Shown here one piece after another: positions 1 to 35,952 of a stretch of 64,000 nucleotides of DNA. Both the position numbers and the translations under genes were made by a program. The stretch spans positions 62,001 through 126,000 of the forward strand of contig CDRNST010000332.1 in NCBI GenBank assembly GCA_977016875.1, given 5' to 3'. The DNA comes from Pavona decussata (Eukaryota). Position 1 is the stretch's first letter. Each line of letters opens with the position of its first letter. The notes under the pieces were generated by a model, which saw nothing but the letters and a program-made list of their open reading frames with translations, did not search any database and was not told the DNA's origin.

Positions 1-151
1 TAATAGTCTTACTCCTGTGGATTGTGGTATTCTGTGAAGGCATTCATTGCCCAAAAAAGTGCACCTGTAATCCATTTGGAAAACATACTCAAGTAACATG
101 CAGCGGTATTGATCAAGTACCGATGGGGATTCCTTCAAGCGTTTTGATTCT
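1..151 (+). CDS. Exon 1 (5' partial): signal peptide + LRRNT
   Basis: Frame from position 3 reads [49 protein letters not shown](L), matching the CPxxCxC...VxC...VP.GIP pattern; donor GTAAG at 152. Confidence 0.85.
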
Positions 152-35300: not shown

Positions 35301-35952
35301 TTTTTTTGGCCAGAAAATGTTGCATTTGAGACTGTACTATAAAACCAATAAGGAACTGTAGTTTCAAAACATTTATTTTGAATATTTGATGCTTGTATTA
35401 ATTATTTTATATTGTCCCCGAGCCAAGAATAACATTTACGCCAATGACAACCTAATGATTATAAGGCGAAAAGTACACGTGTTCCCTGAAATTATAACGA
35501 GTGTCTTTGTTTAAAGATGGACAAAATGAAAATGGATTGGAAATTGAAAAAAAAAAAAAAACTGTAATTCTTTTTTTTATTACAGCCTTCTCTTTAATTG
35601 TTTTTTTTTAGAGTATATCATGCATTTTATGTACAAGATATAGTGCTTAGTTTTAATTCGCAATGTTAACCGGGAAGCTTAAAATCCCTATAAACCGTCC
35701 ACAGCTCCTTTAAGTTTCGTAACTAAAAACGAGCATGCACACATGTTTTCTTACTTTTTTATAGGTAAGGGAATTATCCACGTGAAGTTCTTCTGGAACA
35801 AGATATCTTTGTGCGTGAGACAATGCTTCCATTTCTTTTGGCATGGAGTTGTCTCCATCAAGCAAAAAGCCGAATGGATTTTCCGTGGCTTGGCGTTTTC
35901 CACCCCGAGACTGGAACCATTTGATGCAGGATCATTTTGGAGCCAAGATTGA
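1..35952 (+). CDS. 22-exon gene: signal peptide + LRRNT + 16 LRR + Cys-rich (GCC2/GCC3, ephrin-receptor-like) repeats + ~9-TM domain; orphan LRR multipass receptor/channel-like protein; start codon just left of window
   Basis: Hand-built model join(<1-151,224-295,2490-2561,3464-3523,4421-4495,5258-5335,7443-7514,9271-9345,10344-10415,11287-11352,19894-19965,22359-22430,24373-24444,28064-28135,28949-29020,29373-29444,30015-30086,30439-30495,32041-32264,33061-33180,33517-35031,35765-35952). All introns are GT..AG, phases are consistent and there are no internal stops. From position 3 this is 3399 nt = 1132 aa + stop. Extra exons could be hidden in the N gaps. Confidence 0.88.
224..295 (+). CDS. 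Exon 2, LRR (72 bp)
   Basis: tag|...|gtaag; [23 protein letters not shown]. Confidence 0.88.
853..2124. mobile_element. Non-autonomous DNA transposon (MITE) with ~155-bp TIRs and 9-bp TSD, Mutator-like
   Basis: Termini TAGCCTGCGTAGCAG...CTGCTACTCAGGCTA; TSD TTCTGTCAC at 844-852 and 2125-2133. Confidence 0.85.
2490..2561 (+). CDS. Exon 3, LRR (72 bp)
   Basis: ttttcag|...|gtaag; [23 protein letters not shown]. Confidence 0.9.
2829..2890 (-). mobile_element. tRNA-derived SINE fragment
   Basis: B-box GGTTCGAATCC on - strand (2861-2871) followed by GGAGCACTCGGA...GCCTGTGTCA; no full cloverleaf. Confidence 0.45.
3464..3523 (+). CDS. Exon 4, short LRR (60 bp)
   Basis: cag|...|gtgagt; [19 protein letters not shown]; matched by a paralog exon. 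Confidence 0.85.
3863..4004. repeat. ~140-bp palindromic (hairpin) interspersed element
   Basis: ATATCAGACACTCG...CTCGTGTTTGATAT imperfect inverted repeat; related to 28531-28672 and 8452-8595. Confidence 0.6.
4421..4495 (+). CDS. Exon 5, LRR (75 bp)
   Basis: ttctag|...|gtaagt; [24 protein letters not shown]. Confidence 0.87.
5258..5335 (+). CDS. Exon 6, LRR (78 bp)
   Basis: cccacag|...|gtaagt; [25 protein letters not shown]. Confidence 0.85.
6209..7260. mobile_element. MITE with TTA TSD (PIF/Harbinger- or Zator-type)
   Basis: Termini GGGACGGGCCATTATTTTTCTGGAAGGGG / CCCCCTTCCACAAAAATAATAGTCCGTCCC; flanked by TTA on both sides; internal 33-bp direct repeat near 6437 and 6564. Confidence 0.75.
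7443..7514 (+). CDS. Exon 7, LRR (72 bp)
   Basis: tctag|...|gtaagt; [23 protein letters not shown]. Confidence 0.88.
8452..8595. repeat. Near-perfect ~145-bp hairpin element
   Basis: GGGTTCCAAATACCGAGAAACAGATGAAAGCAC...GTGCTTTCATCTGTTTCTCGGTATTTGGAACCC. Confidence 0.75.
9271..9345 (+). CDS. Exon 8, LRR (75 bp)
   Basis: tttgcag|...|gtaagt; [24 protein letters not shown]. Confidence 0.88.
10344..10415 (+). CDS. Exon 9, LRR (72 bp)
   Basis: tag|...|gtaagt; [23 protein letters not shown]. Confidence 0.88.
10715..10750 (+). repeat. (AAAT)n microsatellite
   Basis: Direct reading. Confidence 0.9.
11287..11352 (+). CDS. Exon 10, LRR (66 bp)
   Basis: ccacag|...|gtaagt; [21 protein letters not shown]. 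Confidence 0.85.
11375..11450 (+). repeat. (AAT)n microsatellite
   Basis: Direct reading. Confidence 0.95.
11611..11687 (+). repeat. (CT)n microsatellite
   Basis: Direct reading. Confidence 0.95.
12520..13075 (+). mobile_element. Degraded 5' part of a Crypton-like (DUF3504) element containing an intron
   Basis: [26 protein letters not shown]...GMTLFK | acceptor aacag ~12915 | [20 protein letters not shown]...KDGSF...[11 protein letters not shown], parallel to the N-terminus of the recombinase at 48587-49856. Confidence 0.55.
13094..13430 (-). repeat. Putative 3' LTR of the BEL/Pao element
   Basis: TGTT...AACA termini; AATAAA on - strand near 13210; lies just downstream of the integrase stop; partner LTR not visible and PPT weak. 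Confidence 0.55.
18690..18985 (-). repeat. Three 102-bp (34-aa) Pro/Ser-rich tandem repeats in the BEL gag N-terminal region
   Basis: GAGGACACCA at 18769, 18871 and 18973; VSS(R/H)VS.LP...PPMPT.AS. Confidence 0.85.
19894..19965 (+). CDS. Exon 11, LRR (72 bp), immediately after an N gap
   Basis: ttttag|...|gtaagt; [23 protein letters not shown]. Confidence 0.8.
20277..20453. mobile_element. ~177-bp palindromic MITE
   Basis: AATAGGCCATTTCCGAGTTGCTGT...ACAGCAACTCGGAAATGGCCTATT. Confidence 0.8.
22359..22430 (+). CDS. Exon 12, LRR (72 bp)
   Basis: ttttttag|...|gtaagt; [23 protein letters not shown]. Confidence 0.88.
24373..24444 (+). CDS. Exon 13, LRR (72 bp)
   Basis: cgcag|...|gtaagt; [23 protein letters not shown]. 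Confidence 0.9.
24658..24802 (+). repeat. Retroposon 3' end with (AAT)n tail; related copy at 11800-11864
   Basis: Shared TTTTAAGTTTCGCTTGGCTCACAG...GTGCATA; both copies abut N gaps. Confidence 0.55.
24833..27739 (-). mobile_element. 5'-truncated L2-clade LINE (APE endonuclease + RT), antisense in intron 13, frameshifted
   Basis: VGDFN, HTLDL, SDHY; [48 protein letters not shown]; 3' hairpin AGCGCTTTT...AAAAGCGCT (~24865-24894) and (TAT)n tail. Confidence 0.93.
28064..28135 (+). CDS. Exon 14, LRR (72 bp)
   Basis: tttcaaag|...|gtaagt; [23 protein letters not shown]. Confidence 0.9.
28531..28672. repeat. ~140-bp hairpin interspersed element
   Basis: ATCAAACACGAG...TTTCCAAACAC...GTGTTTGGAAA...GAGTGTTTGAC. 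Confidence 0.65.
28949..29020 (+). CDS. Exon 15, LRR (72 bp)
   Basis: tttaatag|...|gtgagt; [23 protein letters not shown]. Confidence 0.88.
29373..29444 (+). CDS. Exon 16, LRR (72 bp)
   Basis: tttcag|...|gtaagt; [23 protein letters not shown]. Confidence 0.9.
30015..30086 (+). CDS. Exon 17, LRR (72 bp)
   Basis: ctcacag|...|gtaagt; [23 protein letters not shown]. Confidence 0.88.
30439..30495 (+). CDS. Exon 18, post-LRR cap-like (57 bp)
   Basis: cctttcag|...|gtaagt; [18 protein letters not shown]; symmetric phase 2. Confidence 0.75.
31145..31707 (+). mobile_element. 3' fragment of a CR1/L2-group LINE with (TATG)n tail
   Basis: KLQKLQN.A.R...LGW..L..RR...P.YL...LPKPRT..LKRSF.Y.GA.LWN.LP; AATAAA followed by (TATG)n at ~31674-31707. 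Confidence 0.85.
32041..32264 (+). CDS. Exon 19, start of Cys-rich region
   Basis: Long pyrimidine tract + tag; QCAPSATF...CKCSFCPVG...GSCQACPA(G); donor GTAATA; phase 2 to phase 1. Confidence 0.88.
32355..32395 (+). repeat. (CAA)n microsatellite
   Basis: Direct reading. Confidence 0.85.
32981..33016 (+). repeat. (GAT)n microsatellite
   Basis: Direct reading. Confidence 0.85.
33061..33180 (+). CDS. Exon 20, GCC2/GCC3 (ephrin-receptor-like) Cys repeat
   Basis: ttctcag|...|gtaagc; [39 protein letters not shown]. Confidence 0.9.
33517..35031 (+). CDS. Exon 21 (1515 bp): Cys-rich stalk + nine predicted TM segments
   Basis: caacag acceptor; in frame with ORF 33768..35081; contains [41 protein letters not shown]...[30 protein letters not shown]; donor G|GTAAGA at 35032. 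Confidence 0.93.
35765..35952 (+). CDS. Exon 22, cytoplasmic tail and stop
   Basis: [18 protein letters not shown], phase 1; [12 protein letters not shown]...[10 protein letters not shown]. Confidence 0.72.

Follow-up and report, generated by a model that had tools for sequence, protein, structure and literature searches.

The window analysed here is a 64,000 nt stretch of the Pavona decussata genome (contig CDRNST010000332.1, abbreviated C332, positions 62,001 to 126,000), and its first part is occupied by a gene of 22 exons on the forward strand. Its ATG precedes window position 1 by 19 nt (G000:C332:61982) and the stop codon is at 35950-35952, giving a total of 3402 nt, or 1133 codons and a stop. 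All internal exons have AG/GT borders and the phases are consistent across the 22 exons. The 16 LRR exons each encode one repeat, are 60-75 nt long and are all of phase 2/2, and exons 19-22 show the phase run 2>1>1>1. The model is collinear with the Oculina patagonica RefSeq protein XP_078370474 (1140 aa). Simple LRR motif scans overlooked most of the exons because each exon begins mid-repeat, and mapping with the Oculina protein recovered them. The features are as follows ("mapped" indicates an exon placed with the Oculina protein and bounded by AG/GT; RNA-like runs are X1 and X2).

1..151, + strand: exon 1, signal peptide and LRRNT-like Cys cluster; open frame with ATG, donor GTAAGA, aligns with Oculina XP_078370474 residues 18-70
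224..295, + strand: exon 2, LRR 1; AG/GT borders, phase 2/2, single-exon LRR_8 E 0.0011
2490..2561, + strand: exon 3, LRR 2; mapped, LRR_8 E 4.5e-4
3464..3523, + strand: exon 4, LRR 3, 60 nt; mapped
4421..4495, + strand: exon 5, LRR 4, 75 nt; mapped
5276..5335, + strand: exon 6, LRR 5, 60 nt; mapped
7443..7514, + strand: exon 7, LRR 6; mapped
9271..9345, + strand: exon 8, LRR 7, 75 nt; mapped
10344..10415, + strand: exon 9, LRR 8; mapped
11287..11352, + strand: exon 10, LRR 9, 66 nt; mapped
13787..19409, - strand: fragmented Pao/BEL-type LTR retroelement in intron 10; Peptidase_A17 E 6e-18, Integrase_H2C2 E 6e-8
19894..19965, + strand: exon 11, LRR 10; found by an AG/72 nt/GTAAGT scan, fits Oculina residues 285-308 and the paralogue exon of the same rank
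22359..22430, + strand: exon 12, LRR 11; mapped
24373..24444, + strand: exon 13, LRR 12; mapped
25000..27739, - strand: non-LTR (LINE-type) retroelement in intron 13; RVT_1 E 3.6e-14, Exo_endo_phos_2 E 9e-8
28064..28135, + strand: exon 14, LRR 13; mapped
28949..29020, + strand: exon 15, LRR 14; mapped
29373..29444, + strand: exon 16, LRR 15; mapped, 3' end is a loose end before exon 17 in X1 and X2
30015..30086, + strand: exon 17, LRR 16; mapped, joint 30086>30439 with GT..AG ends in X2
30439..30495, + strand: exon 18, short Cys-containing linker, 57 nt, phase 2/2; acceptor is the X2 joint, donor GTAAGT placed by sequence and frame with no joint, fits Oculina residues 448-465
32041..32264, + strand: exon 19, Cys-rich region and first half of an ephrin-receptor-like repeat; mapped
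33061..33180, + strand: exon 20, ephrin-receptor-like Cys repeat; 74% identity to Oculina, joint to exon 21 in X1 and X2
33517..35031, + strand: exon 21, last Cys repeats, DUF7630 stalk (~33786-33914) and nine-helix membrane domain (~33921-35030); DUF7630 32.9 bits (cut-off 27), AlphaFold pLDDT 90, 60% identity to Oculina over 528 aa
35765..35952, + strand: exon 22, 62-aa cytoplasmic tail and stop; joint 35031>35765 in X1 and X2, contigs fitting this copy better than the paralogues

The encoded protein consists of a signal peptide, LRRNT, 16 LRRs, the short Cys exon, ephrin-receptor-like Cys repeats, DUF7630, nine membrane helices and the 62-aa tail. An initial annotation had proposed 22 in-frame exons encoding a signal peptide, LRRNT, 16 LRRs, Cys repeats, a stalk, membrane segments and a tail; all of the exons were located at or near the span given for them, with splice borders and phases in agreement, and the domain order was correct.

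Pfam profiles were run on the exons singly rather than on the joined spliced protein, and domains split across exons consequently score low. The LRR exons matched LRR_8 below the cut-off (E 4.5e-4 to 0.12 per 23-aa repeat) or, for two exons, gave no match. The repeat register is nevertheless plain in the window sequence and the collinear Oculina orthologue scores 175 bits against LRR_8. Exon 1 matched LRRNT weakly (E 0.3), exon 19 scanned alone had no Pfam match, and exon 20 matched Ephrin_rec_like just below the cut-off (E 1.2e-4, 22.2 bits against 23.1). DUF7630 (PF24633) was detected above its cut-off of 27, at 32.9-33.4 bits, in residues 7-49 of a 437-aa open frame, immediately ahead of helix 1, and was also found in 59 of 67 family members. 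The stalk is invariant in its cysteines in the family alignment, and is rigid and disulfide-rich. An ML-like N-terminal domain (TRP_N PF14558 or ML PF02221) gave no match in any of the exons scanned, nor in the Oculina orthologue or the 42 long relatives, and its place is taken by the LRRs and Cys repeats. No Pfam domain was found in the exon 22 tail.

The assembly contains three N gaps in the gene, all intronic, and no reading frame runs across any of them. Two are in intron 10: one (11865-12061) begins 513 nt past the exon 10 donor, and the other (19683-19887) ends 6 nt before exon 11, leaving the acceptor AG of that exon readable while hiding the tract before it. The third (24500-24657) begins 56 nt past the exon 13 donor, in intron 13. 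Across the three gaps exon order and phase are intact, matching the Oculina protein residue for residue as well as the exon order of a paralogue.

That paralogue is found in the same contig (C332:918001-957500) and shares exons 1-21 and their order with the window copy; no exon 22 was found within this interval. The window copy and the paralogue were compared exon by exon with N gaps left unfilled, and neither copy has a stop codon in the exons compared. Relative to the closest paralogue, the LRR exons have a dN/dS of 0.54 and the TM domain one of 0.20, with non-synonymous change approximately 3.6 times faster in the LRR part than in the membrane part. The comparison did not show positive selection, dN/dS being below 1 in every part. 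Five further loci have exon-1-like and TM-exon-like matches on the same strand, 26-37 kb apart. The family has expanded via tandem duplication.

The locus is an intact, transcribed gene. Coverage in RNA-like run X1 is almost wholly exonic. Transcript joints, examined at this locus from junction 16>17 onward, were found at 30086>30439 (17>18), 33180>33517 (20>21) and 35031>35765 (21>22), and exon 16 is linked to exon 17 through loose ends in X1 and X2. When the junctions of the initial annotation were compared with RNA, 16>17, 17>18, 20>21 and 21>22 were thus recovered, while 18>19 and 19>20, which connect the LRR half to the membrane half, were not seen at this locus among the RNA-like contigs examined. 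The sequence of many RNA contigs is that of a paralogue with 96-97% identity, and several, including one spanning 21>22, fit the window copy better than the paralogues. For a family member from Aurelia (1136 aa, LRR and DUF7630), cluster members of identical length were found on Logan contigs as short as 3.7-3.9 kb, consistent in length with mRNA, though Logan contigs can be chimeric. We consider it very likely that this is a real gene with an LRR-stalk-nine-helix architecture.

The AlphaFold model of the membrane domain is confident (pLDDT 90, pTM 0.88) and contains nine long helices, in agreement with hydropathy and with the approximately nine hydrophobic segments noted initially. A small extracellular beta-sheet includes the LKADYSIEC motif, and on the cytoplasmic side, ahead of helix 6, lies a conserved amphipathic motif, NY....WFWE...MYRK. 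In the 67-sequence family alignment, the nearly invariant columns (K96, I97, F101, Q103, W117, Y215, C232, L248, D251, C256, P279, Y309, W316, E317, E320, R323, K324 and P361) coincide with the TM motifs that had been listed from the window alone. With a signal peptide and ectodomain ahead of nine predicted helices, the tail is placed inside, and the predicted topology therefore has an extracellular N terminus and an intracellular C terminus.

Solved structures provided no counterpart for this fold. When the model was compared with the PDB using Foldseek, nothing was found at E <= 0.001 (best E 0.04, TM 0.15). Among the 48,161 chains compared by VIA-align, the highest Z was 8.2, for a de novo designed helical protein, a value within noise for helical bundles, and a profile search of PDB sequences retrieved nothing meaningful, with rhodopsin only at E 0.33. 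A confident fold with no solved match, GPCRs included, sets the domain as modelled apart from both GPCRs and the canonical TRP fold. The absence of TIR and kinase domains stated in the initial annotation was upheld, as the TM exon and tail have no Pfam match to TIR, kinase or 7TM families.

A distant kinship to the fungal TRP-like Flc/Pkd2 domain had been named in the initial annotation, and was recovered through relatives of the gene. The Pfam family concerned is PF06011 (TRP), the module of fungal Flc proteins and fission-yeast Pkd2. Ten of the 67 family TM domains match PF06011 at E <= 0.01, and one, from Apostichopus japonicus, exceeds the gathering cut-off of 28.5 bits: its isolated TM domain scores 31.0 bits and the full-length protein 36.3 bits, with profile positions 142-411 of 426 covered. 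The same relative matches the window TM exon at E 5.9e-35. The link is transitive, because the window TM exon itself had no match to PF06011 at E <= 1. In the ESM Atlas, models of cnidarian LRR/DUF7630 clusters have TM 0.92-0.93 to the membrane domain, and its nearest language-model neighbours are haptophyte, ciliate and Nucleocytoviricota clusters. These carry ephrin-receptor-like repeats (Ephrin_rec_like), and partly PF06011, on the same predicted fold over all 421 residues (TM 0.77-0.83, predictions on both sides), consistent with the ciliate relatives also named initially. LRRs are not a common domain of the protist and giant-virus clusters, some of which have TIR_2 or START instead. By homology, the membrane domain is probably a divergent member of the PF06011 superfamily. 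The structure and PDB-sequence searches found no solved structure for this superfamily, and hence no pore can be pointed to.

The overall layout of the coral protein is that of fungal Flc/Pkd2 proteins (S. pombe Pkd2, S. cerevisiae Flc1-3, C. neoformans Flc1), to which it is tied in sequence through the relatives passing the PF06011 cut-off. In Pkd2p, a signal peptide and an extracellular domain lead into a central TRP-like membrane domain, and the C terminus is cytoplasmic (PMC6727746; topology also PMC9727806); the same four parts are predicted for the coral protein. The fungal members mostly have an ML-like TRP_N ectodomain where the coral protein has LRRs, ephrin-receptor-like repeats and DUF7630, and the coral protein lacks their C-terminal coiled coil. 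The Flc/Pkd2 family is regarded as fungal-specific in the literature, and Flc proteins function in calcium homeostasis (PMC9600462). With canonical TRP channels and polycystins (PKD2, TRPM, TRPML), the common ground is limited to the historical name TRP and the proposed Ca2+ entry. These have a 6TM tetrameric layout, whereas nine helices are modelled here; the TM exon had no match to Pfam PKD_channel or Ion_trans, and Foldseek returned TRPM3/4 chains only at E 0.37-0.99 (TM 0.12-0.13). LGRs and Toll-like receptors likewise combine an extracellular LRR solenoid, an N-terminal cap and a membrane anchor. In LGRs, however, the anchor is a rhodopsin-type 7TM domain, and in TLRs it is a single helix with a TIR domain, whereas the coral protein has nine predicted helices, no 7TM Pfam or significant GPCR fold match, and no TIR match in the tail or TM exon.

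The family is large: this genome contains at least 119 matches, and public data include 4635 representatives. A similarity search with the TM exon found only close coral relatives of 240-740 aa, owing to the length filter and word pre-filter, and is uninformative on more distant kin. Among homologues of at least 900 aa, LRR_8 was found in 42/42, DUF7630 in 26/42 and PF06011 in 6/42. Predicted animal proteins with the same architecture and conserved motifs include those of Oculina (XP_078370474), Nematostella (A7SVP3 and LOC5518949), Montipora, Aurelia, Sanderia, Apostichopus, Holothuria and Antedon, and some relatives have additional N-terminal CUB, MAM+SRCR or FNIP repeats. The protein is therefore not hidden, as the initial annotation had described it, since full-length predictions are already in RefSeq and UniProt and Pfam has DUF7630 for the stalk. 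Nor is the receptor class confined to cnidarians, as had been suggested, since sea cucumbers and a crinoid share the LRR, Ephrin_rec_like and DUF7630/TRP architecture. Family proteins are thus already predicted in databases but uncharacterised. No paper was found in literature searches for DUF7630, DDB_G0281931 or six Nematostella identifiers, and the family was not mentioned in the coral genome and receptome papers compared.

Taken as a whole, the locus is more plausibly than otherwise an LRR-sensor gene with a Flc/Pkd2-like module that would signal by ion flux. In the proposed mechanism, the LRR solenoid would bind a soluble or surface-bound ligand, the stalk would relay the resulting change to the membrane domain at its extracellular face, and this domain would open or modulate a cation (Ca2+) pathway, with signalling by ion flux and not by a TIR, kinase or G-protein route. 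An ion-conducting function gated through the ectodomain is proposed only tentatively, as a possibility at somewhat less than even chances. The module need not be a channel, because the original description of the Flc proteins was that of flavin or heme-related carriers. In an alternative that we consider unlikely but which deserves attention, the architecture is the same and the nine-helix module is a carrier, a lipid- or flavin-type transporter, or a signalling or trafficking scaffold, with the LRRs serving adhesion or ligand capture. Budding-yeast Flc proteins were linked to FAD/heme transport and osmotic regulation, the molecular mechanism being unknown (PMC6727746), the model of the monomer forms a compact bundle of nine helices unlike any solved channel, and the START or TIR_2 domains of some same-fold Atlas clusters point to lipid or adaptor signalling. 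Against this, reconstituted Pkd2 alone passes Ca2+ under membrane stretch (PMC9727806), and transporter folds do not match either, the best Foldseek transporter rows having TM 0.11-0.15. Stretch is also the sole gating mode tested in the superfamily (PMC9727806), which, with the rigid stalk and its invariant cysteines, would suit a tethered mechanosensor in which the LRRs and stalk anchor to matrix or an adjacent cell and the module is gated by tension in the membrane or tether, not by a diffusible ligand. This appears improbable, as more than 100 paralogues, fast-changing LRRs and ectodomains varied by CUB, MAM and SRCR look more like a recognition repertoire.

The remaining alternatives concern the gene model and the class of receptor. 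That the LRR exons and the TM exon are two separate genes wrongly merged would be in keeping with the two junctions not seen, with one X2 contig that reads past the exon 18 donor and meets an in-frame stop immediately, and with the many database entries that consist of the TM part alone. However, the phases agree throughout, the RefSeq orthologue and all 42 long relatives are fused, and the short Aurelia contigs bear the fused frame of a family member. The extracellular Cys repeats of exons 19 and 20 lack a signal peptide of their own, a transcript joint links exon 20 to the TM exon, and the TM-only entries are mostly gene calls on a single large exon. A wrong merger is accordingly very improbable. 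An LRR ectodomain on a multipass membrane part recalls a divergent LGR-type GPCR, and the Holothuria relative is named LGR4 by its source, but this identity is scarcely credible for a domain with no 7TM Pfam family and a model of nine helices, not seven, to which Foldseek GPCR chains match only at E 0.35-1 (TM <= 0.21); in the PDB-sequence search, rhodopsin matched the profile only at the E value given above.

Studies of coral and cnidarian immunity and symbiosis list TLRs, NLRs, lectins and scavenger receptors. It is conceivable, though we regard it as a rather long shot, that non-vertebrate animals retain an extensive and overlooked class of ionotropic receptors for patterns or partners, in which an LRR solenoid directly gates a Flc/Pkd2-type nine-helix Ca2+ pathway, and that corals, with over 100 such genes, use it for TIR-independent recognition of microbes, symbionts or non-self. 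Should the membrane module conduct Ca2+ in the manner of its fungal relative Pkd2, the family members would act as ligand-binding receptors signalling directly by ion flux, a new receptor logic for early-branching animals and echinoderms. The family offers hundreds of natural ectodomain variants for structural and gating studies of a module without a solved structure, and it probably extends the supposedly fungal-specific Flc/Pkd2 module to animals and protists.

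The locus is a real, transcribed gene on the + strand, with the domain architecture given in the initial annotation. The largest open frame of the region (33492–35078, + strand) encodes Cys-rich repeats, a CxxGYxGxLCxxCxxGYY stalk and a long hydrophobic stretch; the stalk was the only part of it recognised by Pfam, as DUF7630 (PF24633; 32.9 bits, cut-off 27). Domain searches were performed on single exons, one by one. The closest public relative, a 1140-aa RefSeq protein from the coral Oculina patagonica (XP_078370474), was collinear with the + strand from window position 3 to 35826. 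When its blocks were adjusted to AG/GT borders, 22 exons resulted, all of them consistent in phase; the initial annotation had the same exon count and had also made the membrane exon number 21. When 1.5 kb of upstream sequence was read, the ATG was found 19 nt upstream of window position 1, followed by a hydrophobic leader and a CPKKCTC...C cap. The exons sum to 3402 nt (1133 codons plus stop).

Exons of the gene
Exon 1, + strand, starts upstream of the window
16 LRR exons, + strand, 60–75 nt each, all phase 2/2, one repeat per exon, beginning mid-motif
30439–30495, + strand, linker exon (exon 18), 57 nt
Two Cys-repeat exons, + strand, between the linker exon and exon 21
Exon 21, + strand, membrane exon, 1515 nt
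Tail exon (exon 22), + strand, terminates at the stop 35950–35952

Transcription was examined using Logan contigs over window positions 30000–35999. Run X15 covered introns as well and was therefore taken to be DNA, while coverage by the RNA-like run X1 fell almost exclusively in exon bins. Joints bounded by GT..AG occurred at 30086>30439 (RNA-like run X2), 33180>33517 (X1 and X2) and 35031>35765 (X1 and X2), and the loose ends preceding exon 17 in X1 and X2 were the final 30 letters of exon 16. Splicing thus links the LRR exons with one another and with exon 18, and it also connects Cys exon 20 with the membrane exon, which in turn is joined to the tail. None of these contigs showed junction 18>19 or 19>20. 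Many contigs matched the letters of a 96–97% identical paralogue, and several were closer to the window than to paralogues. These included a 787-nt X2 contig over 21>22, which differed from the window at 1+1 positions, from paralogue stretch L010 at 9 (exon 21 part) and from paralogue stretch L011 at 9+16. Because contigs fit each, both the window copy and the 96–97% identical paralogue appear to be transcribed. One X2 contig joined exons 16, 17 and 18 and then read through the exon 18 donor (30496–30613). This donor, GTAAGT, supplies an in-frame TAA, so that retention of intron 18 would yield a secreted LRR-only protein. As X2 has further intronic contigs, the read-through need not be an isoform and may instead come from pre-mRNA or carried-over DNA.

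In the 602 Mb genome holding the window, which spans C332:62001–126000, the membrane exon had at least 119 matches. About 20 of these reached 64–96% identity; most of them sit on the contig of the window gene, and several contained stops. Five further loci had an exon-1-like match and a membrane-exon match on the same strand, 26–37 kb apart. A paralogue on the minus strand of the same contig (C332:918001–957500, L021–L024) carried the first 21 exons in the same order, with 83–100% identity per exon; its tail exon (exon 22) was not located in the sequence retrieved. This copy also appears to be transcribed, as its letters occur in many RNA-like contigs. A second, partial copy of this type of gene lies tail-to-tail with the gene (window 38660–41760, minus strand), in which, of the exons of the Oculina protein, only 1, 4, 6 and 7 gave matches.

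The window gene and the C332:918001–957500 paralogue were compared by the Nei-Gojobori method. The LRR exons gave a dN of 0.066 and a dN/dS of 0.54, against 0.018 and 0.20 for the membrane domain. Neither copy contained a stop in the exons compared, which were those other than exon 19 (alignment gap) and exon 22 (that of the paralogue not found). The sensor half evolves faster than the transducer half; positive selection is not demonstrated.

All 3 assembly gaps are intronic and no frame runs across a gap. They lie in introns that also carry mobile elements, and probably arose because of these insertions.

Gaps and elements in introns
11865–12061, gap in intron 10
19683–19887, gap in intron 10, last base 6 nt upstream of exon 11
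24500–24657, gap in intron 13
Intron 10, minus strand, fragmented Pao/BEL retroelement
Intron 13, minus strand, LINE

Exon 11 (19894–19965), for which the acceptor AG is readable but the pyrimidine tract is not, was located by a splice-site and frame scan. It corresponds to Oculina residues 285–308, and its counterpart is the same-rank exon in the paralogue (exon-by-exon comparison only). Simple repeats just ahead of the first gap (11361–11708) are GA-type and TA-rich, one frame reading ERERER... and poly-Y. Intron 18 contains a 155-aa open frame (31145–31612, + strand) with no Pfam match; it falls within a stretch with a word depth of 71,000–85,000 in X15, indicating a very high-copy genomic repeat.

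The gene is a member of an animal family of very large size: when 1.84 billion representatives were searched exhaustively with HMMER, 4635 proteins matched at E <= 0.001. Sources included corals (Oculina, Orbicella, Montipora, Desmophyllum), a sea anemone (Nematostella), jellyfish (Aurelia, Sanderia) and echinoderms (Apostichopus, Holothuria, Antedon). Among the matches listed, all 42 relatives of at least 900 aa contained LRR_8, with DUF7630 in 26/42, Ephrin_rec_like in 18/42 and PF06011 in 6/42; some relatives had additional CUB, MAM+SRCR or FNIP repeats. An Aurelia family member (P0015) has 1136 aa with LRR and DUF7630, and members of its cluster of identical length sit on Logan contigs of 3.7–3.9 kb, a size compatible with mRNA. 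One Holothuria leucospilota relative (KAJ8020080) is labelled LGR4 at source. It has the LRR, DUF7630 and nine-helix architecture of the family, and the name is probably a mislabel transferred through LRR similarity. The family proteins are already in databases as uncharacterised predictions and the stalk already has a Pfam DUF, while literature searches on the family proteins found no paper.

An AlphaFold model of the membrane domain, built from a 67-sequence alignment, had a pLDDT of 90 and a pTM of 0.88. The motifs singled out in the initial annotation proved to be almost invariant columns of this alignment, among them K96, Q103, D251, E317, E320 and R323.

Parts of the membrane-domain model
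Residues 1–50, small Cys knot
Nine long helices
Residues 112–151, extracellular loop with short helices
Residues 232–255, three-stranded extracellular sheet with the LKADYSIEC motif
Short cytoplasmic helix ahead of helix 6

No match to a solved structure was found by Foldseek, VIA-align or sequence profile, and the predicted fold is confident and new to the PDB. GPCR and TRPM chains appeared only at noise level in the structure searches. In the ESM Atlas the same fold was found in cnidarian LRR/DUF7630 clusters (TM 0.92–0.93) and in clusters from haptophytes, ciliates and giant viruses that have ephrin-receptor-like repeats (TM 0.77–0.83), part of which bear PF06011, TIR_2 or START; language-model neighbours were consistent with these groups. 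TIR_2 was present in 13–18% of members of the haptophyte clusters and START in 42% of another cluster, so in protists the membrane module is paired with varied signalling domains.

Kinship of the membrane domain with the Flc/Pkd2 module is well supported. PF06011 (Pfam 'TRP'), the module that spans the membrane in fungal Flc proteins and in fission-yeast Pkd2, matched 10/67 family membrane domains. A sea cucumber (A. japonicus) relative that matched the window at E 5.9e-35 exceeded the PF06011 curated cut-off (domain 31.0 bits, full length 36.3 bits; profile positions 142–411 of 426). The membrane exon of the window itself had no PF06011 match in the Pfam scan, and the homology is therefore transitive, through the relatives.

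PF06011 has been termed fungal-specific (PMC9600462). In Pkd2p, a signal peptide is followed by an ML-like domain outside the cell, a membrane domain in the centre and a C terminus in the cytoplasm (PMC6727746); membrane stretch leads to Ca2+ passage through reconstituted Pkd2, the structure of which is unsolved (PMC9727806). In the coral protein, binding by the LRRs would gate a Ca2+ pathway. Alternatively, the membrane module may be a carrier or scaffold, or the protein may be a tether-based mechanosensor. The observations bearing on a putative role in immunity, symbiosis or allorecognition are family size, clustering and ectodomain variability only. Proteins of this kind are already known, if poorly understood, and the novel aspect of the family is an LRR ectodomain on an Flc/Pkd2-type module in animals.
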